Positions 3,289 through 37,599 of a stretch of 64,000 bases of DNA are shown here, piece by piece (within the stretch, counting starts at the first letter, position 1; every line of letters starts with the position of its first letter). The notes beneath the pieces were generated by a model. It was not told where the DNA came from. It ran no database searches and saw only the letters and a program-made list of their open reading frames with translations. The position numbers and the translations under genes are program-made. Source of the stretch: Phallusia mammillata (Eukaryota); the NCBI GenBank assembly GCA_965637545.1, contig OZ281494.1, positions 10,478,001-10,542,000 on the forward strand, in the 5' to 3' direction.

Positions 3289-6234
3289 CTAATCATCAGC
3301 TTCTTCGTTTTCGGAACCAGAACTAATTGGAGTTCCAAGAAGACCAAGAATTCCATGTTCTGGGTTGAAACCACCTCGCCTGGGTCCGAAAGGTCCTGGC
3401 CGTGGAACAAAACTACCGCGGTGAGGTCCGAATGGTTCCGGTTTTCCAACTGTAACACATCGTTAAGTTGTAACACATGGTATGTTTGCGTTGAATTAAC
3501 AACATTTTGTACAATTTGAATTTGAAGGTTGTTTCAAATTGAAGTGTATATTCGAAACAGCAAGTCAAGATTTTAAAGGCATTTTTATGAAACTCACCTT
3601 TTGGGGCGCATTCCATCAAGCACTTAATACATTTTTTCTTTTCCATTTGTTCGCTTTCGGTAAGCGGAGGACACTGAAGACAATCGATTCTCGCTTGACG
3701 AATGCACTCTGCCTTATCGGTGCTGTTTCCTGCATCTGTATCACCTAAAAATTAATTGAAATTGTCACAATCTTCTGACACCACAGTTGATTGGGTTAAT
3801 ATAAAGTGTGCTCACCACATTCCTCTTTGACACATTTTCTGCATCCGATAGTAGCGTTGATCATCCTCATTCTGGCTTCCTTTGGTGTGGGACAACTAGC
3901 ACAGTTTTCTTCGCTTCGCGCACATGTGATCACCTTCAATATTTTATGCAGGAATTCTTTAGGCTTGGAAAATCGATCATGTGGGCGTCCTCGACCACCA
4001 AATGGCGATCGTCCGCGTCCACCAGAGAATGGTCCAATTCCTCCTGACATTGGTCGGGGGCCACCAGTTATTTGTGAAAGGAATCCAGCAACTGGTCCGT
4101 TTGATCTTGGTAAAAACTGTGTCATGCCAGACATTGGACCACGGCTACCTGATAATGGTCCGATCCCTCGTGACATTGGTCGTCGACCACCTGAGATTGG
4201 TCCGATACCCCCTGACATTGGTCCATTGCTACCAGAGAATGGACCAATTCCTCCTGACATTGGTCCGCGTCCAACAGAAAATGGTCCGATACCCCGTGAC
4301 ATTAGTCCGCGCCTACTAGAAAATGGTCCGATACCCCCTGACATTGGTCCGCGCCCACCAGAAAATGGTCCGATACCTCCTGATATCGACCTGCGTCCAC
4401 CAGAGAAAGGTCCCACTCCGCCTGTCATTGGTCTGTTTTGTCTCGGCCTTTCAAAGCCTTGACCCATTCCTTGTGATATCAGTGGCACTATGGACTGGAG
4501 CAAACCGGGAAGACCTTCTTGGCCCAAGATTGATTCAAGACCGAAACCAAAGCTTTCCTCGTTAGATTCTTCTTCACTTTCATCGTCGTCATTATCTGTA
4601 ATCGTCGAATATTTCAGTGAACAAAATCAACAAAGATTTCGTTTCTAATAATCACAACTTACGTTTTTTCGAACATTGTTTTAGACACGCAAAACATTTT
4701 TTCTTATTCATCTGATCAGCATCACTCAGTGGAGGACACTCCACGCATTCTTGTCTTGCTTCGGCAATGCAGCTTGCGTCTTCTGTTTTGTTTGTTGGCA
4801 TTTCGCCTATAAAAGTTAACCATCAAATAAAATAAAATAGTAAACAAATACAAAGTAACAAAATCTATACTTTGTGTCATTAACTTACCGCATTCCTCAG
4901 TGACACAATCCTTGCACTCTTTCTTTACGTTTTGCATCTTCTCTTTCATCTCCTTCATGTTTGGACAGTATTGCAACATCAAACATGTTTTGTGGCAAGT
5001 ACTTGACGGCTTTCGTCGTCTACGTGGTTTGTTAGCTGAAAGAGAACCTAAATATTGCAAACGTTTAGTTTGTGTTCAGTTTTTTGGGGTATATAGCACA
5101 TTTGCGTCAACTTACCTCCAAACATGTTGTAACCTGGACCCATGGGCCCACCAACGTCTCCTTGCCCTATATTCAAACCCATTCCGTTATTTCTTGTTCC
5201 AATGCCTGCCAAAAATCAAACAAGATTAAATAATTCATGAGTTTATAAGGAAGTGTTTTTGTCATTTTGTGTGGTTGGAAACGTTCTTACCTCCGAATGG
5301 TGTGGGTCGGACTCCATTGCTAATCACTCCCTCTGGACCTCTGCGATCTAAATAAGCAGTAAATTTGCATTTTATTATAGTTACTAACTTATAAGAAAAG
5401 AAAGTACTTTTTTGTAATAAAATGTAAAGTTGTTGTAATCAAACGCTACGATTCTTTATCAGATTATTTTAGCACAGATTTTAATTGTTACCATGTTTGC
5501 GACATTGCATGAGACACGACGAGCAATTGATCACACGTTCCCTGTCTTTTGTGGGAATCGGAGGACACGAAGTACAATTTTCAAATGCTTCCCGGACACA
5601 TTTCATCACAGCACGTCTGTCCAATGGATCGAGTTGACCTACAAAACATATTCTTTATTTTTCTCAACGCACAATGAACATGTTGCATTAAACGTTTCGA
5701 ATCGTTTTGCCCAAGTTCTTGAGGAAATGTAGTTTCAAAATGTTAAAGCTTTGAATTCCACTCACCGCAACTGGCACGGATGCAGTCGCGACATTCCTTT
5801 CTGTCTTCTTTGGTCTCGTTCTTGATTTCTTCTCGACTTGGGCACTTGGTTGGACCGACGCAAGCTTTTATGCATGCCAGTTTGCCACGGGACTCTCCAC
5901 CTGTGTCTTCTGTGTTTGCTCCTGGATAATTGTTGGGTCTTCTTCCGCTCAGAAGAGCTTCCGACCCTGGAAAGTTTGGTGGCCCCCGTCGCGGAAACCC
6001 TGAACATAAAAGTTTGATTTGGACTGATTTGTGCAAAGCGTTTAAAATTACAACATCACAGAATTTTAGCAAGTGTGATTCAACGTGAACCCTTTTTTAC
6101 ATTTTAATTAAACGTAGCGGCAAAAATTTTGTGTGTGCGAATTTTATCAAAATAGTTCGAAAATGTTGCTGAAACATTCAGTGTTTACCTTGTGCCACAA
6201 CGAAAAACACGGCCAAAATCACGTAGGACTTCAT
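3289..6234 (-). CDS. Secreted six-module Cys-rich / Gly-Pro-repeat protein, copy A1 (10 coding exons, ~654 aa)
   Basis: Manual splicing: 6234-6189 (MKSYVILAVFFVVAQ, signal-peptide-like), 5999-5766, 5638-5492, 5347-5291, 5205-5116, 5047-4889, 4806-4663, 4595-3816, 3744-3598, 3449-3289 (TAG). All introns are GT-AG and phase 1; internal exons are multiples of 3; no stops. Six 6-Cys modules, e.g. CIKACVGPTKCP..CRDCIRASC and CVREAFENCTSCPP..CSSCLMQC. Exon 6 has an alternative in-frame acceptor 12 nt downstream. Confidence 0.9.
4017..4436 (-). repeat. Coding 42-bp minisatellite, 10 units (consensus GPMSGGIGPFSGGR)
   Basis: Units counted from the translation; two internal units are degenerate. Confidence 0.92.
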
Positions 6235-6345
6235 TTTGCTTCTTTGTCGTATCTTAAAAAAAATGTTTGTAATAAATAACTTTGTTTTAGTAATATCAAT
6301 TTCTTTGCAGCTCTGGTCAAAGCGTAAATACATTTTTATGTTTAC

Positions 6346-6545
6346 CTGTAACATATTGTATATTAAGTAACCATCATAACTAACCTTTAAGATTTGTTTC
6401 CAGTAGTTGTCTTAATCTTCCCAATGGGTAACTTGTCCTAACCATCGCAGCCTTATATACCCGTGTGTCCTTATTTTTAACGATGCCTGAGGTGTAACGC
6501 ATTAGAAGATACGTAGCATCCTGTCAGCCCCTGGGCTTCATATTG
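6346..6545 (-). promoter_or_regulatory. Putative core promoter and non-coding first exon of A1
   Basis: Donor cag|gtaaac at 6346; TATATAA at 6459-6453; conserved gcccctgggc motif near 6528-6537. The same layout occurs upstream of A2 and A3. Confidence 0.55.
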
Positions 6546-7772: not shown

Positions 7773-8153
7773 CAGGGTTGCCATACCGGTCTTATTTCTA
7801 AGATTTGTCCTTATTTTCAAAGGCTACGTCTTAAAAAAAGTCCATTGTCCTTTTTTCTAAGAAATGTCCTTATTTTTGACTTAAGTCCTTCTTTTGTCTT
7901 ATTTTCCACAATTACTGGTCAAATACCTGCTACAAGTAAAAGTAAACCTAGACCTGAGCTGTTGCAAGATGCACGAAGTCTTTTTTACAAACAAGGAGTG
8001 GGTGGAACAGATCGTTTCTGCCAAAATATTGCATATGATATGTCACGGCTCGTATAAATGCAAAGATTTGTTCAAAAACGTTTGTTTTATTTCGCATAAA
8101 AAATTAATTTTTCGGTTGTCCTTATTTTTGGTTTCAAGTCGATGGCAACCCTG
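7773..8153. mobile_element. Non-autonomous hAT-type MITE
   Basis: TIR CAGGGTTGCCA / TGGCAACCCTG; 8-bp TSD gctattgc / gctatggc. Second copy at 23363-23742; absent from unit 2. Confidence 0.85.
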
Positions 8154-8579
8154 GCTATGGCGGAAATTCAAAAACAGTATTTTGAGTGTTGTGGCCGGAC
8201 GTTTCGGAATACGTTACAGGTACAAGTTTAGAAAAGCACACATGCTTGTGAATCACAGTTATCACGTGTGCAACAACAAACAACTATAACGGAACAAAAG
8301 CATGAAATATTTCGTATGTGACGACAAAGTTCCGGATAAATTATAACCTCCGGTAGCTGATTAAATAAAGACACCACACCCTAGGTGAGGCAAACTTGTT
8401 TTCGAATACCTCGCTATCACGTGGCTGTGACGTAGATGGTAAAAGTGTTTGTATTTTGCCACAACACAATTATCGTTCATTCCGATATCGTCATCGATAC
8501 ATACGTCTCGTCTCACTGTGAATGGTCTTTCAACTGGAATAGTTTTTCTCTTCTGTATATCGGACACCCTGCTCTGCAG

Positions 8580-8663: not shown

Positions 8664-8718
8664 AATCGTAGCAAATTTATCAGTTTTGCTTGTCTTAACC
8701 TCTCGTTAGTAACCCGAG

Positions 8719-11322: not shown

Positions 11323-14202
11323 CTAATCATCAGCTTCTTCGTTTTCGGAACCAGAACTAATTGGAGTTCCAAGAAGACCAAGAATTCCATGTTCTGGGTT
11401 GAAACCACCTCGCCTGGGTCCGAAAGGTCCTGGCCGTGGAACAAAACTACCGCGGCGAGGTCCGAATGGTTCCGGTTTTCCAACTGTAACACATGGTTGA
11501 GTTGCAACATATGGTATGTTTGCGTTGAATTAACAACATTTTGTACAATTTGAATTTGAAGGTTGTTTCAAATTGAAGTGTATATTCGAAACAGCAAGTC
11601 AAGATTTTAAAGGCATTTTTATGATACTCACCTTTTGGGGCGCATTCCATCAAGCACTTAATACATTTTTTCTTTTCCATTTGTTCGCTTTCGGTAAGCG
11701 GAGGACACTGAAGACAATCGATTCTCGCTTGACGAATGCACTCTGCATTATCGGTGCTGTTTCCTGCATCTGTATCACCTAAAAATTAATTGAAATTGTC
11801 ACAATCTTCTGACACCACAGTTGATTGGGTTAATATAAAGTGTGCTCACCACATTCCTCTTTGACACATTTTCTGCATCCGATAGTAGCGTTGATCATCC
11901 TCATTCTGGCTTCCTTTGGTGTGGGACAACTAGCACAGTTTTCTTCGCTTCGCGCACATGTGATCACCTTCAATATTTTATGCAGGAATTCTTTTGGCTT
12001 GGAAAATCGATCATGTGGGCGTCCTCGACCACTAAATGGCGATCGTCCGCGTCCACCAGAGAATGGTCCAATTCCTCCTGACATTGGTCGGGGGCCACCA
12101 GTTATTTGTGAAAGGAATCCAGCAACTGGTCCGTTTGATCTTGGTAAAAACTGTGTCATGCCAGACATTGGACCACGGCTACCTGATAATGGTCCGATCC
12201 CTCGTGACATTGGTCGTCGACCACCTAAGATTGGTCCGATACCCCCTGACATTGGTCCGCGTCCAACAGAAAATGGTCCGATACCCCTTGACATTAGTCC
12301 GCGCCTACTAGAAAATGGTGCGATACCCCCTGACATTGGTCCGCGCCCACCAGAGAATGGTCCGATACCTCCTGATATCGACCCGCGTCCACCAGAGAAA
12401 GGTCCCACTCCGCCTGTCATTGGTCTGTTTTGTCTCGGCCTTTCAAAGCCTTGACCCATTCCTTGTGATATCAGTGGCACTATGGACTGGAGCAAACCGG
12501 GAAGACCTTCTTGGCCAAAGATTGATTCAAGACCGAAACCAAAGCTTTCCTCGTTAGATTCTTCTTCACTTTCATCGTCGTCATTATCTGTAATCGTCGA
12601 ATATTTCAGTGAACAAAATCGACAAAGATTTCGTTTCTAATAATCACAACTTACGCTTTTTCGAACATTGTTTTAGACACTCAAAACATTTTTTCTTATT
12701 CATCTGATCAGCATCACTCAGTGGAGGACACTCCACGCATTCTTGTCTTGCTTCGGCAATGCAGCTTGCGTCTTCTGTTTTGTTTGTTGACATTTCGCCT
12801 ATAAAAGTTAACCACCAAATAAAATAAAATAGTAAACAAATACAAAGTAACAAAATCTATACTTTGTGTCATTAACTTACCGCATTCCTCAGTGACACAA
12901 TCCTTGCACTCTTTCTTTACGTTTTGCATCTTCTCTTTCATCTCCTTCATGTTTGGACAGTATTGCAACATCAAACATGTTTTATGGCAAGTACTTGACG
13001 GCTTTCGTCGCCTACGTGGTTTGTTAGCTGAAAGAGAACCTAAATATTGCAAACGTTTAGTTTGTGTTCAGTTTTTTGGGGGATATTGCACATTTGCGTC
13101 AACTTACCTCCAAACGTGTTGTAACCTGGACCCATGGGCCCACCAGCGCTTCCTTGCCCTATATTCAAACCCATTCCGTTATTTCTTGTTCCAATGCCTG
13201 TCAAAAATCAAACAAGATTAAATAGTTCATGAGTTTATAAGGATGTGTTTTTTTCATTTTGTGTGTTTGGAAACGTTCTTACCTCCGAATGGTGTGGGTC
13301 GGACTCCATTGCTAATCACTCCCCCTGGACCTCTGCGATCTAAATAAGCAGTAAATTTGCATTTTATTATAGTTACTATAAGAAAAGAAAGTAAATTTTT
13401 GTAACAAAAAAGGAAAAGTTGTTGTAATTAAACGCTACGATTCTTTATCAGATTATTTTAGCACAGATTTTAATTGTTACCATGTTTGCGACATTGCATG
13501 AGACACGACGAGCAATTGATCACACGTTCCCTGTCTTTTGTGGGAATCGGAGGACACGAAGTACAATTTTCAAATGCTTCCCGGACACATTTCATCACAG
13601 CACGTCTGTCCAATGGATCGAGTTGATCTACAAAACATATTCTTTATTTTTCTCAACGCACAATGAACATTCTGCATTAAACGTTTCGAATCGTTTTGCC
13701 CAAGTTCTTGAGGAAATGTAGTTTCAGAATGTTAAAGCTTTGAATTCCACTCACCGCAACTGGCACGGATGCAGTCGCGACATTCCTTTCTGTCTTCTTT
13801 GGTCTCGTTCTTGATTTCTTGTCGACTTGGGCACTTGGTTGGACCGACGCAAGCTTTTATGCATGCCAGTTTACCACGGGACTCTCCACCTGTGTCTTCT
13901 GTGTTTGCTCCTGAATAATTGTTGGGTCTTCTTCCGCTCAGAAGAGCTTCCAACCCTGGATAGTTTTGTGGTCCTCTTTGAGGAAACCCTGAAAGGTGAA
14001 TTAAGTTTAAAACAATTATTTCAAACATAACATCACTGCGTTTTGGTAAGTCATGTATAGCAGCAAAAACACTTTACTGACAACAGAACTTTTGACGAAG
14101 AAGATATTGTTACCAAATCGTTTATTAAATGTTCAACGAAAACAAACATTGTTTACCTTGTGCTACAACGCAAAACACGGCCAAAATCACGTAGGACTTC
14201 AT
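11323..14202 (-). CDS. Secreted six-module Cys-rich / Gly-Pro-repeat protein, copy A2 (~640 aa)
   Basis: Same exon structure as A1: signal exon 14202-14157 (MKSYVILAVFCVVAQ), exon 2 13988-13755, stop 11325-11323. Has one 42-nt repeat fewer than A1. I saw no lesion, but did not check every codon. Confidence 0.87.
12051..12428 (-). repeat. Coding 42-bp minisatellite, 9 units
   Basis: Units counted from the A2 translation. Confidence 0.92.
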
Positions 14203-16686
14203 TTTGCCTTTATGTCGTATCTGCAAAAAAATTAATAACTTAGTTTTAGTTGTATCAATTTGTTTGCAACTCTGTTAAAAAAGTAAATACATTTTTATGT
14301 TTACCTGTAACGTATTGTATATTAATTGAACACGACAAATATTCACCAACCTTAAAAGACTAGTTTCCAATAGTTGCCTTAATCTTCCCAATGGGTAACT
14401 TGTTTTTATCATCGCAGCATTATATACCCATGTGCCCCTATTTTTAACGTTGCCTGAGGTGTAACAAATCAGGAGTTACGTAGCATCCTGTTAGCCCCAG
14501 GGCTTAGTATTGGAGGGAAACTGCAGACGATTTTGCGAAACAGCCTGCTACGTGTCAAAGATTTTATAAAAGACATTCATATATTTTTGAACCATTTTGA
14601 CGTCAGAATCTTGGCAACTTAAATTTAGTTTAATTAGTTTTTCACTGGGTTAAAATTGGACATAGATTGCGGAAGAACAGTTGTGATGTTCTGATATTTG
14701 CCGATAATAAAACGGAATAAACGAATATTACCTTTCCAGCAGTTTTATTCTAAATAATCGACGTTACAAAGTCCGACATATGAAACGACTTCATCAGGAT
14801 AAAGGCATATCTACAGAAAGACATACAGAACTGAATGTTTGTTTTTCAAGAAGAATCCGGCTCTGATTACTTGGCAAATTAACACACAATATTGTGACAT
14901 AACTTTACATGTGAATAAGTTTTTACATATCTGTTCTGATAATTCTATGTCTACAAATACTTAAAGAGTTTTATTTGGTTGTTTGTAGTAACTTCTGGTC
15001 AAATCAAATCATAAAAGCTGATGAAACTACAGCTGCAAGTGATTGATCGACCTAACATTCAATTTGAAATAAGCTAACAAATGTTTGCGATCACTTAAAC
15101 AAACGTGTCAGAACAAACATGTTGGTGTGGAAGCCTTGTAATGTTTGCTTGGTGCAAACCACCCATCACGCGTCCATCGCAACGGATTTCAAACTTTGAA
15201 CGCCCCGCTTCGATCAGCGCCTGGGGCATTGCTTGTGACATCACGGACACGTGCGAAAAGCGCAACTCGAATGTCGGACAAACCTTCTTGCAGGGTTTTA
15301 TTAGCATATTTTGGCTATTTATAACTTTGCGGCGAGCTTTTGATTGTGTGTATCGTAGTAATAACTTGAGCGTGTTGTTTGTGACGCCACAAAGGAAATA
15401 AGACTACTTTCTTTGGACATACTATGTTTGAAAAAGTCCTTGTTTCAAAAATGTTGCAATGATGTTGCAAACCGCTGCTTGGCAATGATATGTTTGTGTT
15501 GTTTACTTGCATTGTTGTTTTCAAAAAATGAAACAAGCCAATATCCTTAATGTTGTTTCCTAAAATGTTTTTGTATTCTGCTATCACACATTTATCGTCC
15601 ATTTAGACAACAATGTCCATACATACATCTTTGGTATTGTGAATTAAGTTTCAGTGGAAAAGTTATTCTGTGATGTTTATCGGACAGAGCACTTTTCAAA
15701 ACGAAACGCACTGCGTGTACGGAAATTGATTTTAAATGACAGTAATTGTCTAGCTCATTAAAAAAATATTTTACTTGCCAGATAAGAGTAACATCCGGGA
15801 AAGCGAAATATTTTGGAAACAAACTTTAATAATTTCCTGTAATTTAAAATCAACTTCCATGCGTTCCGTTGATGAAAGTGCTCTGTACGACATACAGAAC
15901 AAACAAAACAGTTTACATCTGCCAGTTAAAAAATATTCTCAGTAATTTAACGTATGTAAGCTTATATTGACATCATTATTTAAATAAACTACAATATGTC
16001 AACAACTAACAACGAATGCACTATAGGCAGAAGATGCTATAGTCAGGTTGTTGCAAATTCACCTAATTTTTGCATTTGGTTCCAATCCGATGCCCGTATT
16101 GAATGAGGACAGCGATGCCCGTATTGCACCTCATTCAAATAGCACGGTATTTTTTTGATGTGTACAGCATAAATAGAAACACTGATTGTTATTTAAATAA
16201 AACGCATGCTATAATGTTCTAAGTCTTAGTGAACTGTGTGAAAAAGTTGCCTAGTTTTTTTAACGTTTAACTTATTGTGGAAATTTCAAAACCTCAAAGC
16301 TATTTTGAATGTTTCGGCCGGACGTTTTCGCACACGTTACAGTCTGCGAGGTAGAAGTATAGAAAAGCACACATGCTTATGAATCACAGTCATCACGTGC
16401 AAAACAACTAAAAACGGAACAAAAGCATGAAATTTTTCGTATGTGACGACAAAGTTCCGGATAAATTATAGCCCCCGGTAGCTGATTATATAAAGACACC
16501 ACACCCTAGGTGAGGCCAACATGTTTTCGAATACCTCGCTATCACGTGACTGTGACGTAGCGGTGTAGATGGTGAAAAGTGTTTGTATTTTGCCACAACA
16601 CAATTATCGTTCATTCCGATATCTGTGAATGGTCTTTCAATTGGAATAGTTTTTCTCTTCTGTATATCGGACACCCTGCTCTGCAG

Positions 16687-16770: not shown

Positions 16771-16825
16771 AATCGTAGCAAATTTATCAGTTTTGCTTGT
16801 CTTAACCCCTCGTTAGTAACCCGAG

Positions 16826-19120: not shown

Positions 19121-22106
19121 CTAATCATCAGCTTCTTCGTTTTCGGAACCAGAACTAATTGGAGTTCCAAGAAGACCAAGAATTCCATGTTCTGGGTTGA
19201 AACCACCTCGCCTGGGTCCGAAAGGTCCTGGCCGTGGAACAAAACTACCGCGGTGAGGTCCGAATGGTTCCGGTTTTCCAACTGTAACACATCGTTAAGT
19301 TGTAACACATGGTATGTTTGCGTTGAATTAACAACATTTTGTACAATTTGAATTTGAAGGTTGTTTCAAATTGAAGTGTATATTCGAAACAGCAAGTCAA
19401 GATTTTAAAGGCATTTTTATGAAACTCACCTTTTGGGGCGCATTCCATCAAGCACTTAATACATTTTTTCTTTTCCATTTGTTCGCTTTCGGTAAGCGGA
19501 GGACACTGAAGACAATCGATTCTCGCTTGACGAATGCACTCTGCCTTATCGGTGCTGTTTCCTGCATCTGTATCACCTAAAAATTAATTGAAATTGTCAC
19601 AATCATCTGACACCACAGTTGATTGGGTTAATATAAAATGTGCTCACCACATTCCTCTTTGACACATTTTCTGCATCCGATAGTAGCGTTGATCATCCTC
19701 ATTCTGGCTTCCTTTGGTGTGGGACAACTAGCACAGTTTTCTTCGCTTCGCGCACATGTGATCACCTTCAATATTTTATGCAGGAATTCTTTTGGCTTGG
19801 AAAATCGATCATGTGGACGTCCTCGACCACCAAATGGCGATCGTCCGCGTCCACCAGAGAATGGTCCAATTCCTCCTAACATTGGTCGGGGCCCACCAGT
19901 TATTTGTGAAAGGAATCCAGCAACTGGTCCGTTTGATCTTGGTAAAAACTGTGTCATGCCAGACATTGGACCACGGCTACCTGATAATGGTCCGATCCCT
20001 CGTGACATTGGTCGTCGACCACCTGAGATTGGTCCGATACCCCCTGACATTGGTCCGCGTCCAACAGAAAATGGTCCGATACCCACTGACATTAGTCCGC
20101 GCCTACTAGAAAATGGTCCGATACCCCCTGACATTGGTCCGCGTCCAACAGAAAATGGTCCGATACCCCCTGACATTAGTCCGCGCCTACTAGAAAATGG
20201 TCCGATACCCCCTGACATTGGTCCGCGCCCACCAGAAAATGGTCCGATACCTCCTGATATCGACCCGCGTCCACCAGAGAAAGGTCCCACTCCGCCTGTC
20301 ATTGGTCTGTTTTGTCTCGGCCTTTCAAAGCCTTGACCCATTCCTTGTGATATCAGTGGCACTATGGACTGGAGCAAACCGGGAAGACCTTCTTGGCCCA
20401 AGATTGATTCAAGACCGAAACCAAAGCTTTCCTCGTTAGATTCTTCTTCACTTTCATCGTCGTCATTATCTGTAATCGTCGAATATTTCAGTGAACAAAA
20501 TCAACAAAGATTTCGTTTCTAATAATCACAACTTACGTTTTTTCGAACATTGTTTTAGACACTCAAAACATTTTTTCTTATTCATCTGATCAGCATCACT
20601 CAGTGGAGGACACTCCACGCATTCTTGTCTTGCTTCGGCAATGCAGCTTGCGTCTTCTGTTTTGTTTGTTGACATTTCGCCTATAAAAGTTAACCACCAA
20701 ATAAAATAAAATAGTAAACAAATACAAAGTAACAAAATCTATACTTTGTGTCATTAACTTACCGCATTCCTCAGTGACACAATCCTTGCACTCTTTCTTT
20801 ACGTTTTGCATCTTCTCTTTCATCTCCTTCATGTTTGGACAGTATTGCAACATCAAACATGTTTTATGGCAAGTACTTGACGGCTTTCGTCGTCTACGTG
20901 GTTTGTTAGCTGAAAGAGAACCTAAATATTGCAAACGTTTAGTTTGTGTTCAGTTTTTTGGGGGATATAGCACATTTGCGTCAACTTACCTCCAAACGTG
21001 TTGTAACCTGGACCCATGGGCCCACCAACGCTTCCTTGCCCTATATTCAAACCCATTCCGTTATTTCTTGTTCCAATGCCTGTCAAAAATCAAACAAGAT
21101 TAAATAGTTCATGAGTTTATAAGGATGTGTTTTTGTCCTTTTGTGTGTTTGGAAACGTTCTTACCTCCGAATGGTGTGGGTCGGACTCCATTGCTAATCA
21201 CTCTCCCTGGACCTCTGCGATCTAAATAAGCAGTAAATTTGCATTTTATTATAGTTACTATAAGAAAAGAAAGTAAATTTTTGTAATAAAATGTAAAGTT
21301 GTTGTAATCAAACGCTACGATTCTTTATCAGATTATTTTAGCACAGATTTTAATTGTTACCATGTTTGCGACATTGCATGAGACACGACGAGCAATTGAT
21401 CACACGTTCCCTGTCTTTTGTGGGAATCGGAGGACACGAAGTACAATTTTCAAATGCTTCCCGGACACATTTCATCACAGCACGTCTGTCCAATGGATCG
21501 AGTTGACCTACAAAACATATTCTTTATTTTTCTCAACGCACAATGAACATGTTGCATTAAACGTTTCGAATCGTTTTGCCCAAGTTCTTGAGGAAATGTA
21601 GTTTCAGAATGTTAAAGCTTTGAAGATTTCCACTCACCGCAACTGGCACGGATGCAGTCGCGACATTCCTTTCTGTCTTCTTTGGTCTCGTTCTTGATTT
21701 CTTCTCGACTTGGGCACTTGGTTGGACCGACGCAAGCTTTTATGCATGCCAGTTTACCACGGGACTCTCCACCTGCGTCTTCTGTGTTTGCTCCTGGATA
21801 ATTGTTGGGTCTTCTTCCGCTCAGAAGAGCTTCCAACCCTGGAAAGTTTGGTGGCCCCCGTCGCGGAAACCCTGAACATAAAAGTTTGATTTGGACTGAT
21901 TTGTGCAAAGCGTTTAAAATTACAACATCACAGAATTTTAGCAACTGTGATTCAACGTGAACCCTTTTTTACAGTTTAATTAAACGTAGCGGCAAAAATT
22001 TTTTGTGTGCGAATTATATCAAAATAGTTCGAAAATGTTGCTGAAACATTCAGTGTTTACCTTGTGCCACAACGAAAAACACGGCCAAAATCACGTAGGA
22101 CTTCAT
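19121..22106 (-). CDS. Secreted six-module Cys-rich / Gly-Pro-repeat protein, copy A3 (~668 aa)
   Basis: Same exon structure as A1: signal exon 22106-22061, stop 19123-19121. Has one 42-nt repeat more than A1. Confidence 0.87.
19849..20310 (-). repeat. Coding 42-bp minisatellite, 11 units
   Basis: Units counted from the A3 translation. Confidence 0.92.
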
Positions 22107-27079: not shown

Positions 27080-27235
27080 CGTAGCTTCAGGGCCTAAGAT
27101 TACAGTCAGATTATACTAACTTTAACCTTTCCAATTCTCATGCCTTGGGGCTGAATGTGTCGAATATAAAACGAACCTGAGTTTCGACTTTATTTCAGCT
27201 TTATTTTTGAAAGTCAACTTAGAGAATTCAAAGGT
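27080..27235 (+). promoter_or_regulatory. Putative core promoter and non-coding first exon of B
   Basis: agcttcagggcctaagattacagtca (~27084-27109) is nearly identical to the inverted copy upstream of C (~37858-37888); TATAAAA at 27165; donor aaag|gtaagt near 27233. Confidence 0.55.
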
Positions 27236-27339
27236 AAGTGTGTTATATGCACTAAAATATAACATTCAGTGATAACTGTTTCTTATGTGCGTTAAAAGTC
27301 GTCATTTTGTACTTTGCAGAGTAACAGCGACATACGATC

Positions 27340-30300
27340 ATGAAAACATTACTGTTTCTTGCGGTGTGTTTAGTTGTTGTCCAAGGTTGGTACCGAAGTT
27401 TTTATTAATGCCTTAATTTTGTTAAAACGTTGCCCAACTGATGTAGCACATGTGTATTGTGTTCAAACGGCGCAGTCGACGTATTGCATTTAAGATTATT
27501 TTACGCCTGCAGTAAATTTTACCTTTATGTTTGATGAAACAGGCTTTTCTTGAGTTACTGTAAAATAAGATTTCTATGAATTACAACTATAATCAATATA
27601 CACGATTTTTCATTCATAAAAATACGATTTTTTTTAGTCGGTATCGGGTCTCCTAGGTCACCTAAACCAAGTGGGGTAAACACTGACCGTCGAGACAATT
27701 CAAAACAGCGTTGCATGGCGAAATGCACCTCATCGAACAAGTGCCCTGTTCGCGAACCTGACAGCGATGCTGTGCAGGACCAACGGCAAGACTGCAAGGA
27801 CTGCCTTACAAATGCCTGTGGTACGTCTTAGCTAACCGTACGAAGTTAATGTGACATTGTTAATTGTATTTAAACTGCAAATTAAATTAGACCAGATGAT
27901 AGAATCGTCACTTGTACAAATGGACTGCATCGCTTTTGGGCATTTAAGTATATTTTGTAAAAGCATAGAGCCAATAAATGATAAGCTGCAGACAGTGCAC
28001 ACTGTTTCGACCTATAAGGTCTCATCAGTGCAGCAGCGGTAACGAGAGATCGGCCGCATTGGCTAGTGTAGCCATTCAACGGCACTACAGTTTGTTGGGA
28101 GCACAGGGTACAACCCCATGCATCACCTAGTCTGAGCGATGCCACAACTGGACTTGGGAACCACAGTACTGTGACACTGAGCCGACTTCACTGTGGTTCC
28201 CAAGCAGTTGCTTGGCCATTGTGAGCCAGTTTCATCTGTGCTGTATGTCCAGTTGTGGCATCGCTCAGACTAGGTGATGCATGGGGTTGTACCCTGTGCT
28301 CCCAACAAACTGGAGTGCCGTTGAATGGCTACACTAGCCAATGCGGCCGATCTCTCGTCACCACTGCACTGATGAGACCTTATAGGTCGAAACAGTGTGC
28401 ACTGTCTGCAGCTTAAGTATATTTTTGTTTATAGGTTACTTTGACCGGTCTAATAAAAGCACAGTTCAAGATTGTGTAGAAAATGCAAGACCAAGTTGTG
28501 CGGCCTGTCCCACCCCTTCGCCAGTTGAACGAGCGGTCAAAGCTAAATGCAACAGATGCGTCAAAAAATGCAGGTCAAAAAGCCGTAAGTTTTGTTTTTT
28601 ATTGGTAATATTATTATTATTTTGTTAATTCAACAGTTAAAGCTGCACTTTGAAAAAGTTGTGATTACCATTTTACTAAAATGATTGGTTTTGTACAATA
28701 GGGGCTAAAACTGCAAAACATTTTTTAGGCTTCATTGCAATCATGTTCATCTTAAACAATTAAAAAAATCTAATCTTTAGTGATTTTTTTAGCTCGTTCG
28801 CCAAAGCCTGGACGCCGTGACCGAGGTAAGTGATGCATTTCATTTTTTTTACTTTTTTAATCTGTAAATGTTTGTGATGTTTTTAGATGCTTGAAATATT
28901 TAAAACCAAACGTAACGTTTTAACACACAGATCTATGTTTTGCAACACATATCTGATAAAAGAGTTATTTGTTCATGACTTTTCTCCTTTAAGGTCCAAA
29001 TTATTGCGTCTTTACTTAATTTGTAGATTTTGAATAAACTTTAGCTTGTCGGATTTTATATATTTTTTCGCATAAGTAACAAGGGGCTAACCAATAAAAC
29101 TTATATTACTGACGCTAGAAATTCAACCGTTTTACAGATTCAGGAACTGCAAGCAAATCACCGAAGCCAAAACGCCAATGCTATAAATCGTGCATCAAAA
29201 CTGCGAACTGCACAAGCTTAAATGTTGTCAAGGAGCAGATGAAGGCGGCTAGAAATGCCTGCAGAGAATGCGTGAAGGAGATTTGTGGTAAGAACAACTT
29301 CTTTACTTAAGTTTGTAGTTCATGAAAAGTTAAGATAGTACATTTTATGGTTTAATTTAAGTTTTATAATCTAATGTTTCAATGAAGCCCCAAAGTGTTG
29401 CCCATCGTGTTTTATTTTTTTCTGCTTCATTTCGCATTAAACGAATAGACAAAATGAAAACTCAACAACATTAATTCGTGATAAAAATGTGTGACACATT
29501 TAATTTTGTTTTTTGTCAAAAATTACAAGATCCCGCTTAACGCTAATTTTTTATGTCATAATTTTAATGCAGGCCCGTACGACAAGACCAACCGCAGCGA
29601 AATTGCTGAGTGCATAAAAGATGCCAGAGAAGAATGTGACGAGTGCCCTCCAGTGCCTGTTCAAGATCAAGTTGAAAAAAAGAAATGCAAAGTCTGTCTT
29701 CGAAAATGCTCACCAAAGCCCGGTAAACTATTGCTGATGCAACACCAACGTCGTAAAACATTTCTAATATTTTTAAACTTAAGATGCCCATATTGGCCAA
29801 ATGACTATAGTACATGAACTTATTGATAATGACCTACAAACTTTTAATCAGATTTGCCAACGTAACTGGTACATATAGCTTAAAAGGCTCAACGCACCAT
29901 ACTATTGGCATTGGATTTCTTTGACCTGACAGAACAGAAACTATATCGGTATAACTATATGTCTACCAAAAATCGGTATCGATCTTAAATATCGTATCGG
30001 TCGATTCCAACTGTAAACACGTGTCACGTCAAAATAGCTTTAATTTAGTAGACCAAAATTTATTATTCACGAAACGTTACACACTCATATCACGAACTCA
30101 CTTTTGTCTTGCAAAAAACACCAGATTGTTCACTTTTATGTAACATATAGTCAAATTCCTGTTTTAGCTGGTCGTGCAGCACGCAGATTGGGAAACATAC
30201 GCGGCTCTAATCGTGGAGAAGGGTCAGCAGGTCGCCGGGAAAGCTCGTTGGAGTTTCTTTTAAGAATGGCCAAATGTATTCGGAATCGTCCTGTTTGCAA

Positions 30301-31488
30301 ATCCTGTCCCAAACCACAGGTCATGAGAAAGAAGTTGCAAAACGCAACAAAGGCTTGCAGAGCATGTGTTAAGGAGGAGTGTGGTAAGTAAGACAAAAAT
30401 GATTTTCATTAAACATGGTTTTCGTTGTTTGCTGTGGTTCATATGATGTGTGGCAAATTTTATGTTTATAACTGTACTAAATTACCAAAGATTAAGCATA
30501 GCACACTGGACAAGTAGATGTATTTGCAACAGCATAATTTAATACAAAAACAACATTTACTGTTAACTATTAAAATACAAATTGTTGGTAGAATTCAGTG
30601 ATATTCAACCGGTGTTTCGCATAAAATTTATTAGTTTGACTACATTTTAGTTTGGTGTTCTGCAAGATCTTTTTAATGCATCTAGTGTTCTTTAAAATAC
30701 TGGTATAATTAATGATTGTTTACAATTACATTTCTTTTCAGGTGACATTGATCGTAGTAACAAGACCGAAGTGGCGGAGTGTGTCCAAGAAGCGAGAGGT
30801 GACTGTACTTATTGTCCTCCCATCAGTGAAGAGGATCAAAGAAACAAAAAGAACTGTAGCAAGTGTCTAAAGGGTTGTGCATTTTCCAAGGGTTAGTTTT
30901 TTGTAAATGAGCTTAGTTCAATTGCCCATTAGCACCCATTGCAATAAGGTATTTTTAGTCACGTAATAACTTATTTAAAAGTTACTACAAGTATAACTTA
31001 TAACCACGGCCAAATAACTTATTTACATCTGCCTTAAACGTACATTGCGTGTTTTCCTTGAAAAAAAAGTGTTTGAAATTTTCTGTTTAACGACGTATAA
31101 CAATTGCAAGCCGGCCTGAACTCGGTCCGTAGGCACGAACTGTTTTGATACAAATCCTATACTAGGCACGACAGTTGTTGAAATAACGACAAGAATATGT
31201 TTTTTTTTTCAAACAAAGCCTGAACCTAACCCGACTTACATTTTTGTAACAAATGTACTGAAACTATCTTAATGATACTTTCTATTTTCTTCAACATTTT
31301 ATCGCTTAGGGATTGATTGATTAAACAAACAAAACTTATTTGCAACAGGGGTAAGCTTTTTCCTGGGCGGGATACTTTCGAGATTATATGGACATCCAGG
31401 CCAATCAAGACCCTCCTTTTCACTCCCTTGGCCGCCAACGCCAGGTCGAAACAACAGAGGCACACCAAGGGGTGGACTATACATTTAG
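27340..31488 (+). CDS. Secreted six-module Cys-rich protein, divergent compact paralogue B (9 coding exons, ~405 aa)
   Basis: Exons 27340-27385 (MKTLLFLAVCLVVVQ), 27638-27820, 28435-28584, 28793-28825, 29138-29287, 29573-29722, 30168-30383, 30742-30891, 31349-31488 (..PRGGLYI*). All phase 1, GT-AG, frame open. Same A-B-A-B-A'-B module order as A1-A3 but without the long Gly/Pro repeat. The last exon is supported by an in-frame homologous exon in paralogue C. Confidence 0.88.
27984..28413. mobile_element. Long-hairpin MITE with ~185-bp terminal inverted repeats, TA-flanked
   Basis: agctgcagacagtgcacactgtttcgacc... is mirrored almost perfectly by ...ggtcgaaacagtgtgcactgtctgcagct. TA on both sides suggests a Tc1/mariner-like TSD. 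A second inner inverted repeat (ttgggaaccacagt / actgtggttcccaa) is present. Confidence 0.88.
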
Positions 31489-32249
31489 AATTGACACGAA
31501 TGAAACCAAAACACCTTTTCTTGTAAAACATGACCAAATAAAAAAAATGTTTGTTATAAACATCAAACTAGTAATCATTGCTGTAGTGTTATGATTTGTT
31601 TCTCTTCAACATATATTTTTAAGTTACACGTTGTGGTTGATTTGATTGCACAAACGATGGGCGCAACTGTTGTTGTTTAATGATCTTTTAAGTGTAGACT
31701 GGAATAAACCAATGCATCATATGACGAGTAGCCAGTGAGACAGGTAGAGAGTTAAAAACAAGTCAAGAGTTTTTTGTTATTTTTATAACAAAACCTCACC
31801 CAACCATTGCCACAATCATCAAATTTTCAAACCATTTTCCATCCAAATTGGTGCTAATATTTTTTGCATTAGCTACAGGTATTCACCAAAATTCAATTTA
31901 ACTTTTGATGTAATTTACTAATTTTAGGTGATGTGAAAAACGTGCTCCGATAATTTTTACAATAAAAAAGCATAGCAACGAAGAACCGGGCGTTCTTCGT
32001 CACTTTTCAAACCCAGCTACCCACTCTAAACTAATACGTTTTTGAATAGTGTTATCCTATTAAAATAAAGTGTTAATATCAGGTGGAAGTAAGAAGTGTC
32101 CCAGATCATCCACACTCGAAATTTCACTAATTTAATCAATATTATAAAATGAAAAGTCTAAAAACTGATTTCTATTCACATCGATACTTTCTGTTGAACT
32201 TGACAGGTCACAAAGCGAAAAAAAATTATTGGGTTATTTAGTTCGGCGC

Positions 32250-33660
32250 AAAAAGGCTACAGCCAGGTTTTTTTCAAAAACGGGGTCAAAATTAGTGGTT
32301 TCCGATTCCGTTTTAAACCGGTTTGGAGGTTCGGTGGGAGGCAGAAACAGGTTTTTCCGTTTTTGGAAGTTTTGGAAAAAAACAGGATTTTTGGAAGTCA
32401 AAAAAATGAAGAAAAATCCGGTTTTGCATGGCTTTCATTCCAGTTTCAAACTGGTTTTAGCTGGTTTCAGTCTCCTACAAAACTTTCAAACCGGTTTAAA
32501 CCGGAATCGGAAACAACTAATTTTGACCTGATTTTCGAAAAAAAAAAAAAGGCAATAGCCCTTCCGTTTTTTCGTTTTTTGGGAGTCAAAAAATGAAGAA
32601 AAATTCGGTTTTGAGTGGCTTTTCGCCGGAATATTTAGTTTCAAACCGGTTTCAGCCGGTTTCTGCCTTCTACCAAACCTCCAAACCAGTTCAAAACGGA
32701 ATCGGAAACAACTATTTTTAACGCGATTTTCGAAAAACCCTAAGGCTGTAGCCTTTCCGTTTTTTTTCCATTTTTGGGAGTTTTGGGGGAAAAAACAGGA
32801 TTTTTGGAAGTCAAAAAAATGAAGAAAAATCCGGTTTTGCATGGCTTTCATTCCAGTTTCAAACTGGTTTTAGCTGGTTTCAGTCTCCTACCGAACCTCC
32901 AAACCAGTTCAAAACGGAATCGGAAACAACTAATTTTGACCCGATTTTCAAAAAAAAACAAAGGCAATAGCCGTTCCGCTTTTTCGAATTTTGGGAGTCA
33001 CAAAATTGAAGAAAATCCGGCTTTGGGTGGTTTTAGCCGGAATATTCCAGTTTCAAACAGGTTTTAGCCGGTTTCTGCCGCCTGCAGAACCTCCAAACCG
33101 GTTTAAAGCGCAATCGGAAACAACTAATTTTGACGCGATGTTCGAAAAATCCTAAGGCTGTAGCCATTCCGTTTTTTCGAACTTTGGGAGTCAAAAAATG
33201 AAGAAAAATCCGGTTTTGGGTGGGTTTTCGCCGAAATATTCCAGTTTCAAACTGGTTTTAGCCGGTTTCTGCCTAGTCCTACCGAACCTCCGGTTTCTGC
33301 CTCCTACCGAACCTCCAAACCGGTTTAAACCGGAATTGGAAACAACTAATTTTGACCCGATTTGTTTAAACGAAAACAACTAATTTTGACGCAATTTGTT
33401 TAAACCGGAATCGGAAACAACTAATTTTCACCTGATTTTAGAAAAAATCCTAAGGCTGCCTCCTACCGAACCTCCAAACCGGTTGAAACTTGAATCTGAG
33501 CGACATAAATTTTTCCCCATCTTTCAAAAAAAAAAACCTAAGGCTTTAGCCTTTCCTTTTTCGGAATTCGGGCGTCAATAAATTGGAGAAAATTCCGGTT
33601 TCGGGTGGGTTTTGCTGAAATAATCCGGTTTCAAACTGGTTTTCTACACTACCTAACCCT
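32250..33660. repeat. Satellite-like element of ~190-bp units (about 7), first unit inverted
   Basis: The motif gaagaaaaatccggtt recurs near 32408, 32596, 32821, 33009, 33200; ccgaacctccaaaccggtttaaaccggaatcggaaacaactaattttgac recurs. 32250-32350 is the reverse complement of the later units. Confidence 0.85.
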
Positions 33661-33853
33661 GTGCTTGTCCGTCATATGATGCATTTCTTAATTTCTGACG
33701 ACAATTTGAAGATTATTAAATAGCAAGTAGTGTCCATCGTTGGTGCAAGCACAAACCAACCAGGACGTGCAATTGTTGAAATATATGTTGAGTACAAAAC
33801 AATTCATAATACTACAGATGTTATTCTACAAAAGGTGATTCCTTGTGTACATT

Positions 33854-36800
33854 CTAAATGTACAGTCCCCCATATGGTTGCCTTCTTGGTTCGATCCTGT
33901 TGTTCAGACCTGGAATTGGTCGACAAGGGTGGCCCAGTACTATAATAAGGGGTGGTATTCTTTGTGTTGGTTGTAAGAATATAAAATGAAGGATCCCGCT
34001 CCGAAAGAAAGACATTCCTGTTGAAAATTATTTTGTTTGTTTAATCGATTTTCAAACAATTAATGACAGACAATAAGAGCGGTCATAATTGTTTTTAGAC
34101 ATTTGTTTTATGGCGTTAAACAGGAGAAATGCAAATACATTCTTTTTATCAAATCTGAAAACACACAATTACCTTGAGTTTGCAGTATGGATTTTCGTGT
34201 CATTTATGAATGAATCTTAGACTTAAATGTGCGCTGTGTTTTGTTACATTGCATTCTAATTGGTAATTCACTATTCGTACTTTTCTATGTATATTTATAA
34301 CAAAACTAGCCTTTGGAAAATGCACACCCCTTCAGACACTTTCTGCAGCTCTTTTTGTTTCTCTGTTCCTCTTCACTGATCGGAGGACAATAAATACAGT
34401 CTCCTCTCGCTTCTTGGATACATTCCCCCATTTCGGTCCTGTTACTAATATTAATATCACCTGAAAACAAATTTAATCTTAAATAACGCATAATACCAAC
34501 ATGTTGTGCATAATTGTGCTGTAGCAAATGTTTTTATTCCCAGTGCGCTACGTTTGAAGTTTTTGATTAGAATACTTGCAACTTTAAAAAGCTGAACAAA
34601 ACGTCATACGGACGACATAAAGGTTAGGTCAAACGTAAAAATAGGTTGTTGACAATTACTTGTTTTTCTGACTTACCACAATTCATCTTAACACATGCTT
34701 TGCAAGCCTTTGTTGCGTTCTGCAACTTCTTTCTCATAGCCTGTGGTTTAGGACAAGATGCGCAAATTGGACGATTCCGAACACATTTGATCATTCTAAA
34801 AAAAAGTCACCAGCTAATCCTCCTCCCCGATTAGAGCCGCATCTGTTTCCGGATCCACGTCCTCTACTACCAGCTAAAACAGGAAGGAATTTGTTTTGAT
34901 TATACCCAAAAGAGAACAATGTGGTGTTTTTGGCAACACAAAAGTTTGTTATTAATTCAAATCAGTGGCGGTATTCAATTTTTTTGTCAGCCGGTTCTAT
35001 CACAAAAGTGAAAATTTTCAGCCGGTTCTGTTACAAAAAGTCTATTGACAACTGGTTCGCTGATCTCAGAAAATTTCGTGAGACGGTTTTGCAGAACCGA
35101 ACCGGCCGAATCCCACCACTGATTCGAGTATGCAAAGTTTCTTTTATTATTATTTTTAGACTAACAAATTAGAGCGTTCTGACAGAACACGTGTCTATAA
35201 TTGGAATCGACCGATGGGTTTTTTTAAGGCCGATATTCAAGGCCGCGAACAATATTTTTTCTGTACTGTCGGCTTAAAAAAACACAATACCTATAATATA
35301 TTGCGTTTGGGGTTTCAAGCCATGTATACCAGTTTATTTGGCAGATTAAAAACTTGTGTGTGCTGCTAATATCAATAAGTACATGCATTGTTCACATGGT
35401 CGCTTGAATAATGGATATCTAAATTTAAAAAAGCACATTTGAAGTGTTGTAGTACGCTGGTTTAGCATCAGATCAGATAACCTGAATTCGGTAAGCACTT
35501 TCGAAGACAGACTTTGCACTTCTTTTTTTCAACTTGATCTTGTACAGGCACTGGAGGGCACTCGTCACAATCTTCTCTCGCATCTTTTATGCATTCAGCA
35601 ATTTCCCTGCGATTGGTCTTTCCGTACAGACCTACAATATATAATGACTATATCTGGAATTAGGTGTTACTAGGATCTGACTCTATTTGAATTGAATGTA
35701 AAAACCGAAACAAAGTGCGGTATTTTTTCAAGCATATAATTTGTGTTTTTTTGATTAGCCTCAATAAAGACAAACTTTTATGTGGCAAAAATGCGATATG
35801 TAGCACAAAAGCCGTAACGTGTAGCAAAAGAAAGTTTTTTTTTAAAAGAAAAAATATGGTTCCATTGAAATATCAAACTATAAAAGTAAGTTTAGAAACT
35901 ATCGGATTAAACTACAAAATGCACCATCTTGTCTTCGCCATTTTAGCCATATTCCTTCCATTTATCAAACACACCCCTTCCAGTGCTGGAAATTCAACAA
36001 ACGAATAACTCCCAGAACTTCGAAATTGTGATTTCCGGAGCCCAATCATAGAGCAAACCTAATTGCACATGTTGTTCTTACCACAAGTCTTCACCACGCA
36101 TTCTTTACATGCATTTCGAGTCGATTCCATTTGTTCCTTGACAACACTTAATCCTGTGCAGTTTCCAATTGCAACGCACGATTTATAGCATTGGCGCTTT
36201 GCCTTCGTTGATTGACTTTCAGTTCCTAAATCTATGAAACTATGGTTATATTTCCAGCGTTAGCAACAGAAACACATTAAGTGGTTAACTGCTAGTTTCT
36301 TGTACAAAGTTATTTAAGTATATTAAGCCAGACAAGTCCAACCTTTTTTAAGTCAAATAAACAAAATGAAACACTTTTGTAAACTGATACTCAAATAAGG
36401 TGACAAAAATGCATGCAGTTTTTCTTTTTGATTAAAGTGATGATTACAAAAAAGTAATAGCAAAACTTACGGCTGTTCGACGTGCATATATTCACGCAAT
36501 TGCTGCATCTAAAGTTGGCCACTCGTTCACGTGGCGAAGGAGTAGAACAGGACTTACAAGTTGACTTCGCTTGTTCCAAACAAAATTGAGATGAATTGAG
36601 ATTCTACCGAGCTGGTTAAAGTTAACTAAAAGCAAACAAAAAATCCATGAATATTAAAAACGATTTTGAACATTTGTGTATGTGAAAATTCTGCCTTGTC
36701 ATTTACTTTCTTATTTGACAGGTTAATTCAGTAGTTTCCAACCGAGGCGGAAATCCTCGTTAGGGACAACTTTTAAAACTTGAGGGTAATAATTTTCTCG

Positions 36801-37599
36801 ATTTTTTCATATGGTTGGTAAATAGATACTTAAGCTCTGGGAATACGTCCTGTGTAGTTGATAAAAGGCCCAGTTTTAATCAACTTTTGTATAGTTTAGC
36901 ATTTACTATGTAGTGTATTAGGGAGGAATGAAAATGTTTTGAGTTGAGGAATTCATCGATCAAGGTTGAAGACCACTGCGTTAAACAATTAACAATGTGA
37001 TGGTAATTTCGTAGACTGTTAGCGGCACCTAAAGACATACCACAGAAATTTCTAATGCAGTTCTTGCAGTTTTGGTTTTGCATCGAATCGCTCTCGTTCT
37101 CACGAACCTGGCATTTCTTCCATGAGATGCATTTTGCCATGCAGCGCTGCTTGGAATTGTCTTCACCAGAACGGTGAGTGCTTGCACCACTTGGTTTAGG
37201 TGAACTGGGGAACCAGTTACTTGCTTAAGAAAAAAGTGCATGCTTTTATGAATGACAAATCGTTTATTTCGGATAGATTTTAGTTAAAGTAATTGCATTA
37301 TAGCTGAAATTCATAGAAATCGAACTTTATGGGTTTTATGAGGGCCTACTCTTACTCAGACAAGATTCGGCTATAGGCGTCATAAAACATTTTTTTACGC
37401 GCCTACATTGTATGCAACGAGTGCACTGATGGTACACGATTCAAATGCTTATTTTACACAAAAGTGGTTAGCCTCTTATATCATAAACCAGTTGTACGAC
37501 ATATTTAAGTGTGTACAAAATGAAGGAGTTTTACAAAAAATCCTTGTACCAACCTTGAGCAACAACTAAGCACACCGCCAGAAACAACAATGTTCGCAT
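33854..37599 (-). pseudogene. Disrupted paralogue C of gene B (inverted copy)
   Basis: Exons 37599-37554 (MRTLLFLAVCLVVAQ), 37223-37041, 36625-36471, 36231-36082, 35631-35482, 34873-34677, 34460-34311, 34017-33854 (..YGGLYI*). Lesions: exon 3 is 155 nt versus 150 in B, and the alternative acceptor at 36611 gives an in-frame TAG; exon 7 is 197 nt (1-nt loss in a T8 run near 34798-34805); the exon 8 donor is GC instead of GT. Confidence 0.78.
34963..35121. mobile_element. Short hAT-type MITE in an intron of gene C
   Basis: TIR cagtggcggtattc / gaatcccaccactg; degenerate TSD attcaaat / attcgagt. Absent from the matching intron of B. Confidence 0.7.

Follow-up and report, generated by a model that had tools for sequence, protein, structure and literature searches.

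What kind of protein is encoded by a cluster of cysteine-rich genes in the ascidian Phallusia mammillata that an earlier note, made from the DNA sequence alone, was unable to assign to any known domain? The cluster occupies positions 3289-37599 of a 64,000-nucleotide (nt) stretch of contig OZ281494.1 (positions 10,478,001 to 10,542,000 of the forward strand; referred to as the window, to which all coordinates below refer), which is free of N and has a G+C content of ~36-43%. Six-frame translation revealed cysteine-rich open segments in five places, four of them on the minus strand (3.4-6.1, 11.4-14.1, 19.2-22.0, and 34.3-37.2 kb) and one on the plus strand (27.6-30.9 kb). Each of these copies (genes 1 to 5) had a first coding exon of 46 nt encoding a signal peptide, followed by six six-cysteine modules in the order A-B-A-B-A-B. 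As described below, two neighboring modules, A and B, appear to form a 12-cysteine unit, three of which are strung on basic linkers in a family of predicted secreted proteins found in ascidians.

The cysteine spacing of the A module was C-x3-C-x5-C-x16-C-x2-C-x4-C (x14 instead of x16 in A1 of gene 5), and that of the B module was C-x7-C-x2-C-x13-C-x2-C-x3-C in all five copies. The third A module (A3) had a variant N-terminal half, also in all five copies: C-x6-C-x2-C-x16-C-x2-C-x4-C. A six-frame regular-expression search for these patterns detected 10 A modules (x14 or x16), 5 A3 variants, and 15 B modules in the window, and none in 200 shuffles. The spacings of A, A3, and B and the fixed order of the six modules were therefore as the earlier note had reported them. 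Its statement that N-x-S/T sequons recur just before B modules held for genes 1 and 4 in five of their six units (NKT and NST in gene 1; NKS, NRS, and NKT in gene 4), the exception being B1 of gene 1. The hydrophobic N-terminus comprised 15 amino acid residues (aa), and the mature proteins contained 36 cysteines, every one inside a module; the extra cysteine of genes 2 and 4 was located in the signal peptide. B followed A after 12-13 residues in the window proteins. The linkers were rich in Gly+Pro (15-52%) and in Lys+Arg (12-39%) and were basic (isoelectric point (pI) of 10-12), while the units themselves were near neutral.

Genes 1-3 (A-type) lie on the minus strand in tandem units of ~8 kb, with 94-98% identity across genes and flanks, and genes 4 (B-type, with short linkers) and 5 form an inverted pair. 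Spliced models of genes 1-4 were open and encoded 654, 640, 668, and 405 aa, respectively, in 10 coding exons (genes 1-3) or 9 (gene 4), and all of their introns were GT..AG and phase 1; in gene 1, this was because the first coding exon is 46 nt long and the length of each internal exon is divisible by three. These models agreed with the proposal that each module ends an exon and that all introns are in phase 1. On the other hand, the exon picture of the earlier note, while correct for signal and module exons, lacked other elements: Gly-rich mini-exons (two, of 57 and 90 nt, in genes 1-3; gene 4 has a single mini-exon of 33 nt), a tail exon at the end, beyond the B3 exon, and a non-coding leader exon. 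Similarly, five module sets with the shared 46-nt signal exon were present, but only four of the five putative paralogues were intact, since gene 5 carried frame and splice defects. The cluster thus contains one decayed copy alongside four intact genes.

Contigs of four runs were placed on positions 3100-6400; runs X8, X9, and X11 derived from three studies. All nine introns of gene 1 appeared as exact joints in contigs of these three runs (CT..AC on the plus strand, corresponding to GT..AG on the minus strand), and hence the spliced transcripts by which the gene models were to be checked were observed for this gene. The joint of intron 9 was also found in a marine metatranscriptome (X20). Word depth of the gene 1 contigs, which is a rough guide when taken from contigs, was up to several thousand in X8 and ~500-4,400 in X9, whereas almost none of the words of gene 1 were present in four further runs that carry the same species label and are guessed to be RNA. 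This contrast suggested that gene 1 is expressed in bulk, but restricted to a tissue or stage. Low-depth contigs of X8 and X9 (45 and 21, versus thousands for the spliced form) crossed intron 9 at 3423-3627 with five base differences, and may represent a retained intron, pre-mRNA, or a paralogue or allele. Alternative joints with one or two extra letters (GC, T) at 4595-4665 and 5637-5766, detected in X8 and X11, matched sequence differences of genes 2 and 3; therefore, the runs contained transcripts from additional A-type paralogues or from alternative alleles.

When an HMMER profile of the B modules was searched against 1.84 billion representative proteins, 20 matches in total were obtained: every match with a named source was an "uncharacterized protein" from an ascidian (Ciona intestinalis or Clavelina lepadiformis), and the remaining matches were short open reading frames (ORFs) from ENA assemblies. 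The B profile scored 203 bits (E of 2e-56) on Clavelina P0001. The Clavelina homologues were 307-1450 aa long (LOC143461565, 1450 aa; LOC143462160; LOC143462730; LOC143461586), and those of Ciona were LOC100185480 (XP_002132139.1, a 381-aa model; the longer UPI000180F0EC has 1061 aa), LOC104265882, and LOC104266425, the last being a single secreted unit of only 119 aa. The homologues contained 1-13 strictly alternating A-B pairs, in which the A-to-B spacing was near constant while the B-to-A linkers varied from 12 to 227 aa. Because of this strict alternation, near-constant inner spacing, and variable outer linker, the true domain-level unit is, as judged from sequence, the adjacent A-B pair of ~82-89 aa with 12 invariant cysteines (6+6), present three times per window protein. 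The family was accordingly defined by the strict alternation of A (C-x3-C-x5-C-x15/17-C-x2-C-x4-C) with B (C-x7-C-x2-C-x11/13-C-x2-C-x3-C), each B module coming 7-16 residues after its A; this definition covered all 15 window pairs, allowing for the variant N-half of A3, as well as the 1-13 pairs of each Ciona or Clavelina protein. A and B profiles showed weak similarity to each other (hhalign probability of 62%), and it is plausible that the two modules share an origin through an old internal duplication.

The likeness to the window genes extended beyond cysteine spacing and strict alternation to a signal-like N-terminus and basic Gly/Pro-rich linkers. In Clavelina, one module per exon was again found, with the exon ends of P0003, P0004, and P0011 falling directly after the ...C-G of the A module and after the B module (phase was deduced from split codons only), and three family genes were arranged in tandem, similar to the clustered window genes. 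Gene 1 and Ciona LOC100185480 (~30-40% identity) shared a whole order of segments: a B module, an acidic patch, a hydrophobic Gly-rich stretch, basic GG-x-x-P-M/F heptads, and the last A-B pair; that is, both have an acidic patch and a Gly/Pro/Met/Arg heptad repeat before the last unit. The differences were also clear. Identity between the window proteins and the Ciona and Clavelina proteins was ~25-44% (34-44% between window pairs and the best pairs of these species), the number of units was 1-13 instead of 3, and the A3 variant (C-x6-C-x2-C N-half), present in both gene types of the window, was found in none of these homologues. In the B module, the basic cluster before the fourth cysteine was conserved across species, while other Lys/Arg positions were not. 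Taken together, the sequence comparisons indicate that the A-B family is ascidian-restricted and so far uncharacterized, with its homologues in two other genera annotated as such. A limited literature search found nothing on the family, whether under the Ciona locus names or in work on tunicate-specific secreted proteins rich in cysteine, on ascidian adhesive proteins, or on VBP-129. Queried with the A3 portion of gene 1 exon 8, a word-based protein search gave no candidate, its 5-mer word rule and length window excluding real relatives, and an exact look-up of Ciona P0017 gave no contig. Among the ENA matches, a B-module ORF at 10001-10342 of a 380-kb contig of ERZ25067576 stood in a eukaryote-like context with a reverse-transcriptase fragment nearby; this contig is probably from another tunicate genome carrying the family.

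The absence of an assignable domain, as stated in the earlier note, was borne out by all the searches performed. Pfam scans of gene 1 exons and five homologues at E<=1-10 gave no relevant family (a chance match of the window exons to DUF1263 was at 0.092), and for lustrin (of which Pfam presumably holds a cysteine-rich domain model), saposin, and other cysteine-rich domains in Pfam, no model exceeded the gathering score with the window exons or homologues. Among PDB chain sequences, the A, B, and A-B profiles gave only chance matches to zinc fingers or HU domains at E<=10 (E>0.5), including a C-x2-C...C-x2-C zinc finger for the B profile (E of 0.68), and neither a window B exon nor a Ciona pair yielded a usable match in feature searches of the ESM Atlas. 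The A-B pair was modeled from Ciona (the pair nearest to the window, 44% identical to A2-B2 of gene 4), and the window proteins themselves were folded as single modules. AlphaFold2 predicted five helices and two helix-loop-helix modules for the Ciona A-B pair (22-row alignment; predicted local distance difference test (pLDDT) of 72.5 and predicted template-modelling score (pTM) of 0.47) and, for the B2 exon of gene 4 (40-row alignment; pLDDT of 80.5), a helix at 7-20, a loop with C-x2-C-P, and a helix at 29-45. With these models, Foldseek against PDB found nothing below an E of 2.6 for the Ciona pair and no match at all for the gene 4 B module; an ESM Atlas fold search with the Ciona pair remained below a template-modelling score (TM) of 0.5; and VIA-align (wide and second-look searches) listed only generic helical bundles and hairpins for both models.

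The modules are thus predicted to be helix-loop-helix structures with three cysteines per arm. The earlier description of each module as a three-disulfide helical hairpin agreed with the models in its helical part, and the three disulfides are presumed. Helix-loop-helix domains stapled by inter-arm disulfides (as predicted here) are also seen in plant alpha-hairpinins, CHCH domains, and saposin-like domains. Alpha-hairpinins have the pattern C-x3-C...C-x3-C and are made from multi-module precursors, CHCH domains have twin C-x9-C motifs and are mitochondrial and not secreted, and saposin-like domains are helical with six cysteines. However, the A and B modules differ in having three cysteines per arm, spaced 3/5 or 7/2 in one arm and 2/4 or 2/3 in the other, in place of twin C-x3-C or C-x9-C motifs, and neither Pfam nor the fold searches matched any of these three families.

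What, then, might such proteins do? The most likely function, which we propose tentatively and at somewhat less than an even chance, is that of extracellular structural or matrix material, produced in bulk by a particular tissue or at a particular stage. The chain would begin with a cleavable signal peptide, and secretion is suggested by the hydrophobic 15-aa N-terminus; three A-B units of ~89 aa would follow, usually with a sequon for N-glycosylation between A and B of one unit. Because the cysteine count is even (36) and the route is secretory, all cysteines are presumably paired, which would give each module three disulfides and each protein 18. The basic Gly/Pro-rich linkers joining the units are probably disordered, in view of their Gly+Pro content, pI, and tandem repeats. 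In A-type proteins, the last linker contains an acidic patch and then a Gly-Pro-Met/Phe-Arg repeat of heptads or 14-mers with variable copy number, in the same arrangement as in the Ciona relative. The disulfide-stapled beads may serve as rigid knots for binding or cross-linking, and extensibility or charge-driven self-assembly may come from the elastomer-like linkers. This proposal is based on the combination of rigid knots on Gly/Pro spacers, an acidic patch beside an Arg-rich variable repeat, and very high, restricted expression; furthermore, the linkers themselves are likely functional, because they are long (up to 227 aa) and their repeat/acidic architecture is conserved between species. 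Small cysteine-rich domains on Pro/Gly-rich extensible segments are known in lustrin A-type nacre proteins and in cnidarian cnidoin and minicollagen, which resemble the A-B proteins in being secreted, in the alternation of cysteine-rich domains with Pro/Gly-rich segments, in acidic and basic patches, and in high expression in secretory tissue. On the other hand, there is no sequence relationship with these proteins, and the cysteine patterns and predicted helical fold of the A-B family differ.

Several points weigh against a matrix role. The Pfam, PDB, and fold searches linked the family to no known matrix protein, either by homology or by fold, and the Ciona pair model was of only middling confidence (pTM of 0.47). 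The C-x2-C...C-x2-C motifs could bind metal or act in redox reactions, and high expression together with a beads-on-string architecture is also compatible with defense effectors or polyprotein precursors.

The units may bind microbes or glycans (sulfated polysaccharides, or chitin and cellulose surfaces) in mucus or plasma, with the intact protein acting as a multivalent defense or recognition molecule. The rapid divergence (~40% identity between ascidian genera, with only the cysteines and a few residues fixed), the recent tandem duplication, gene loss, and variation in repeat number, and the conserved basic cluster in B are all consistent with such a role, which we nevertheless regard as unlikely: neither Pfam nor the fold searches revealed similarity to any lectin or pattern-recognition domain, and an elastomer-like repeat with an acidic patch has no obvious function in recognition.

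Rather unlikely, too, is a polyprotein precursor, similar to that of plant alpha-hairpinins, in which cleavage in the basic linkers would free ~90-aa, 12-cysteine miniproteins with an antimicrobial, toxin-like, or signaling function. Homologues carry anywhere from 1 to 13 units, one Ciona member is already a single 119-aa secreted unit, transcripts are very abundant, and 30 of 41 linkers contained dibasic residues, in many cases no more than 12 residues away from the A module that follows. However, dibasic pairs are expected by chance at 12-39% Lys+Arg, and the canonical furin site R-x-K/R-R was found in only 2 of the 41 linkers. Moreover, the linkers reach 227 aa and their repeat/acidic architecture is kept between species, which suggests a function of their own.

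The earlier note had also pointed to a likeness to vanabins. These proteins (Vanabin1-4, P, and X) are small, all-helical, and Lys/Arg-rich, with short C-x(2-5)-C intervals and, in some cases, acidic tails; a single bow-shaped core domain contains 18 conserved cysteines (16 in VanabinX) and nine disulfides (PMC9486056). They bind V(IV) and reduce V(V), are known so far only from vanadium-rich ascidians, and, in the classical forms, act in the cytoplasm of vanadocytes (PMC9486056). The A-B unit has 12 cysteines, three times over, instead of 18 or 16 in one core. Vanabin2 (PDB 1VFI) was not reached by the A, B, or A-B profiles among PDB sequences at E<=10, and this protein, which has a bow-shaped four-helix fold, appeared neither in the Foldseek nor in the VIA-align lists of the pair and B-module models. 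Pfam, which we take to include a Vanabin-2 model, gave no vanabin match in the scans of window exons and five homologues at E<=1-10. Vanabins are single domains, cytoplasmic in the classical forms, whereas the A-B proteins have many domains and a signal peptide. With no sequence, profile, or fold-search match, the suggested likeness found no support, and a vanabin identity of the family was set aside.

A separate question is whether these proteins are secreted, multi-domain relatives of vanabins whose units handle metals in a similar manner, binding V(IV), Fe, Cu, or Zn or reducing thiol-disulfides. The host belongs to the ascidians, as do the sources of its best homologues, Ciona and Clavelina, and the modules, predicted to be all-helical, are Lys/Arg-rich with C-x2-C and C-x4-C motifs; vanabins are likewise ascidian-only, helical, and fully disulfide-bonded (PMC9486056), and the weak PDB match of the B profile was to a zinc finger. 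We consider this quite improbable in light of the cysteine number, the failure of profiles, Pfam, and both fold-search lists to reach Vanabin2, and the contrast between a cytoplasmic location and a signal peptide; in addition, Lys/Arg positions were not conserved across species except in the basic cluster before the fourth cysteine of B. From the shared host group and the shared helical, disulfide-rich, and basic character, a distant or functional link to vanabins has a small chance. A broader proposal, which we hold to be very improbable, is that the A-B pair is a tunicate-specific, disulfide-rich helical domain not described before, representing either the ancestral stock of vanabins or a parallel ascidian invention for metal cations, and that the secreted proteins would yield a metal- or charge-cross-linked elastomeric extracellular material found only in sea squirts. 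Finally, the possibility of chance ORFs or mis-assembled repeats, favored only by the lack of annotation for P. mammillata in protein libraries, is negligible and was refuted by the exact joints of the nine gene 1 introns in three studies, together with the homologues in two other ascidian genera and the absence of pattern matches in 200 shuffles.

Gene 1 (3289..6234, minus strand) was read base by base, and its 10 coding exons are as follows: signal peptide (6234-6189), linker and A1 (5999-5766), B1 (5638-5492), two Gly-rich mini-exons (5347-5291 and 5205-5116), A2 (5047-4889), B2 (4806-4663), acidic patch, Gly/Pro repeat, and A3 (exon 8; 4595-3816), B3 (3744-3598), and tail with stop (3449-3289). 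Tandem Repeats Finder located a coding repeat of 42 nt in exon 8 (4130..4433, minus strand; 7.2 copies), whose 14-aa unit is GPMSGGIGPFSGGR-like with a sub-period of 21 nt or 7 aa, and equivalent arrays in gene 2 (12188-12425; 5.7 copies) and gene 3 (19962-20307; 8.2 copies); this difference in copy number accounts for the exon 8 lengths of 780, 738, and 822 nt in genes 1, 2, and 3, respectively.

Gene 2 (11323..14202, minus strand) was mapped from the exons of gene 1 (14202-14157, 13988-13755, 13627-13481, 13339-13283, 13197-13108, 13039-12881, 12798-12655, 12587-11850, 11778-11632, and 11483-11323), with an open frame and GT..AG, phase 1 introns. A non-coding leader exon of gene 2 (14351..14400, minus strand; 3' end at ~14351, donor GT at 14350, start approximate) was recognized from a 26-nt loose contig end of run X8 at 6259, which matched 14358-14383 with 1 mismatch; a TATATAA box lies ~30 nt upstream of the approximate start. 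Gene 1 may have a diverged counterpart of this exon near 6385-6400. Gene 3 (19121..22106, minus strand), mapped exon for exon from gene 1, also had an open frame (22106-22061, 21871-21638, 21507-21361, 21221-21165, 21079-20990, 20921-20763, 20680-20537, 20469-19648, 19576-19430, and 19281-19121).

Gene 4 (27340..31488, plus strand), as modeled from the sequence with the open frame and GT..AG, phase 1 introns given above, would comprise exons for the signal peptide (27340-27385), A1 (27638-27820), B1 (28435-28584), the mini-exon (28793-28825), A2 (29138-29287), B2 (29573-29722), A3 (30168-30383), B3 (30742-30891), and the tail (31349-31488). Its intron 2 holds a near-perfect palindrome of 434 bp (27982-28415; arms of 52 nt with 100% and 121 nt with 98% complementarity), which has the appearance of a foldback or miniature inverted-repeat transposable element (MITE)-like insertion and has no counterpart in gene 5. 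The putative gene 5 (33851..37599, minus strand) is an inverted copy of gene 4 with its signal exon at 37599-37554, and retained all six modules as open segments: A1 (37161-37039), B1 (36600-36481), A2 (36208-36080), B2 (35611-35492), A3 (34803-34675), and B3 (34440-34321). Compared with gene 4, 5 extra nt at the start of the B1 exon (near 36614) lead to an in-frame TAG, a net loss of 19 nt in the A3 exon (-18 and -1 near 34808-34802) leads to TGA, and the B3 donor is changed from GT to GC near 34311; no counterpart of the 33-nt exon was found in this comparison, and the tail exon was scrambled. Because of these frame shifts, stops, the donor change, and the lost 33-nt exon, gene 5 is probably a pseudogene; assembly errors in a T-run could account for one of these defects at most. 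The inverted arms extend over 27016-31726 (gene 4) and 37948-33670 (gene 5), and the center between them (32387-33405) is a tandem array with a unit of ~195 bp plus smaller repeats of 25 and 34 bp.

Two neighboring loci were also observed in the window. At 38300-52000 on the minus strand, a multi-exon gene for a membrane protein occurs in three tandem copies: one exon encodes a conserved transmembrane segment and, after it, a Cys-cluster tail (CCCASPINMGSSNCCGSCC...), and another a Tyr/His/Ser-rich loop; the pieces searched gave no Pfam match. At 60070-60795 on the plus strand, two open segments matched the C- and N-terminal parts of Pfam Pentaxin just below the gathering score (21 bits, E of ~3e-4), and are probably exons of a pentraxin-like gene.

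Although no other living group is closer to vertebrates than the tunicates, many of their most abundant secreted products are undescribed. The A-B pair would add a new 12-cysteine domain, predicted to be helical, with no counterpart in Pfam, PDB, or the ESM Atlas. While the domain family is new, its kind is familiar: secreted, cysteine-rich, modular proteins assembled from phase 1 exons. A tempting annotation as vanabins has been removed as unsupported. If these proteins do form a bead-and-spring extracellular material, they would offer a new model for protein elastomers, and if the units bind metals, the metal-handling toolkit of ascidians would be widened beyond vanabins. Since clear orthologues occur in the experimentally tractable Ciona, the function of the family is directly testable.

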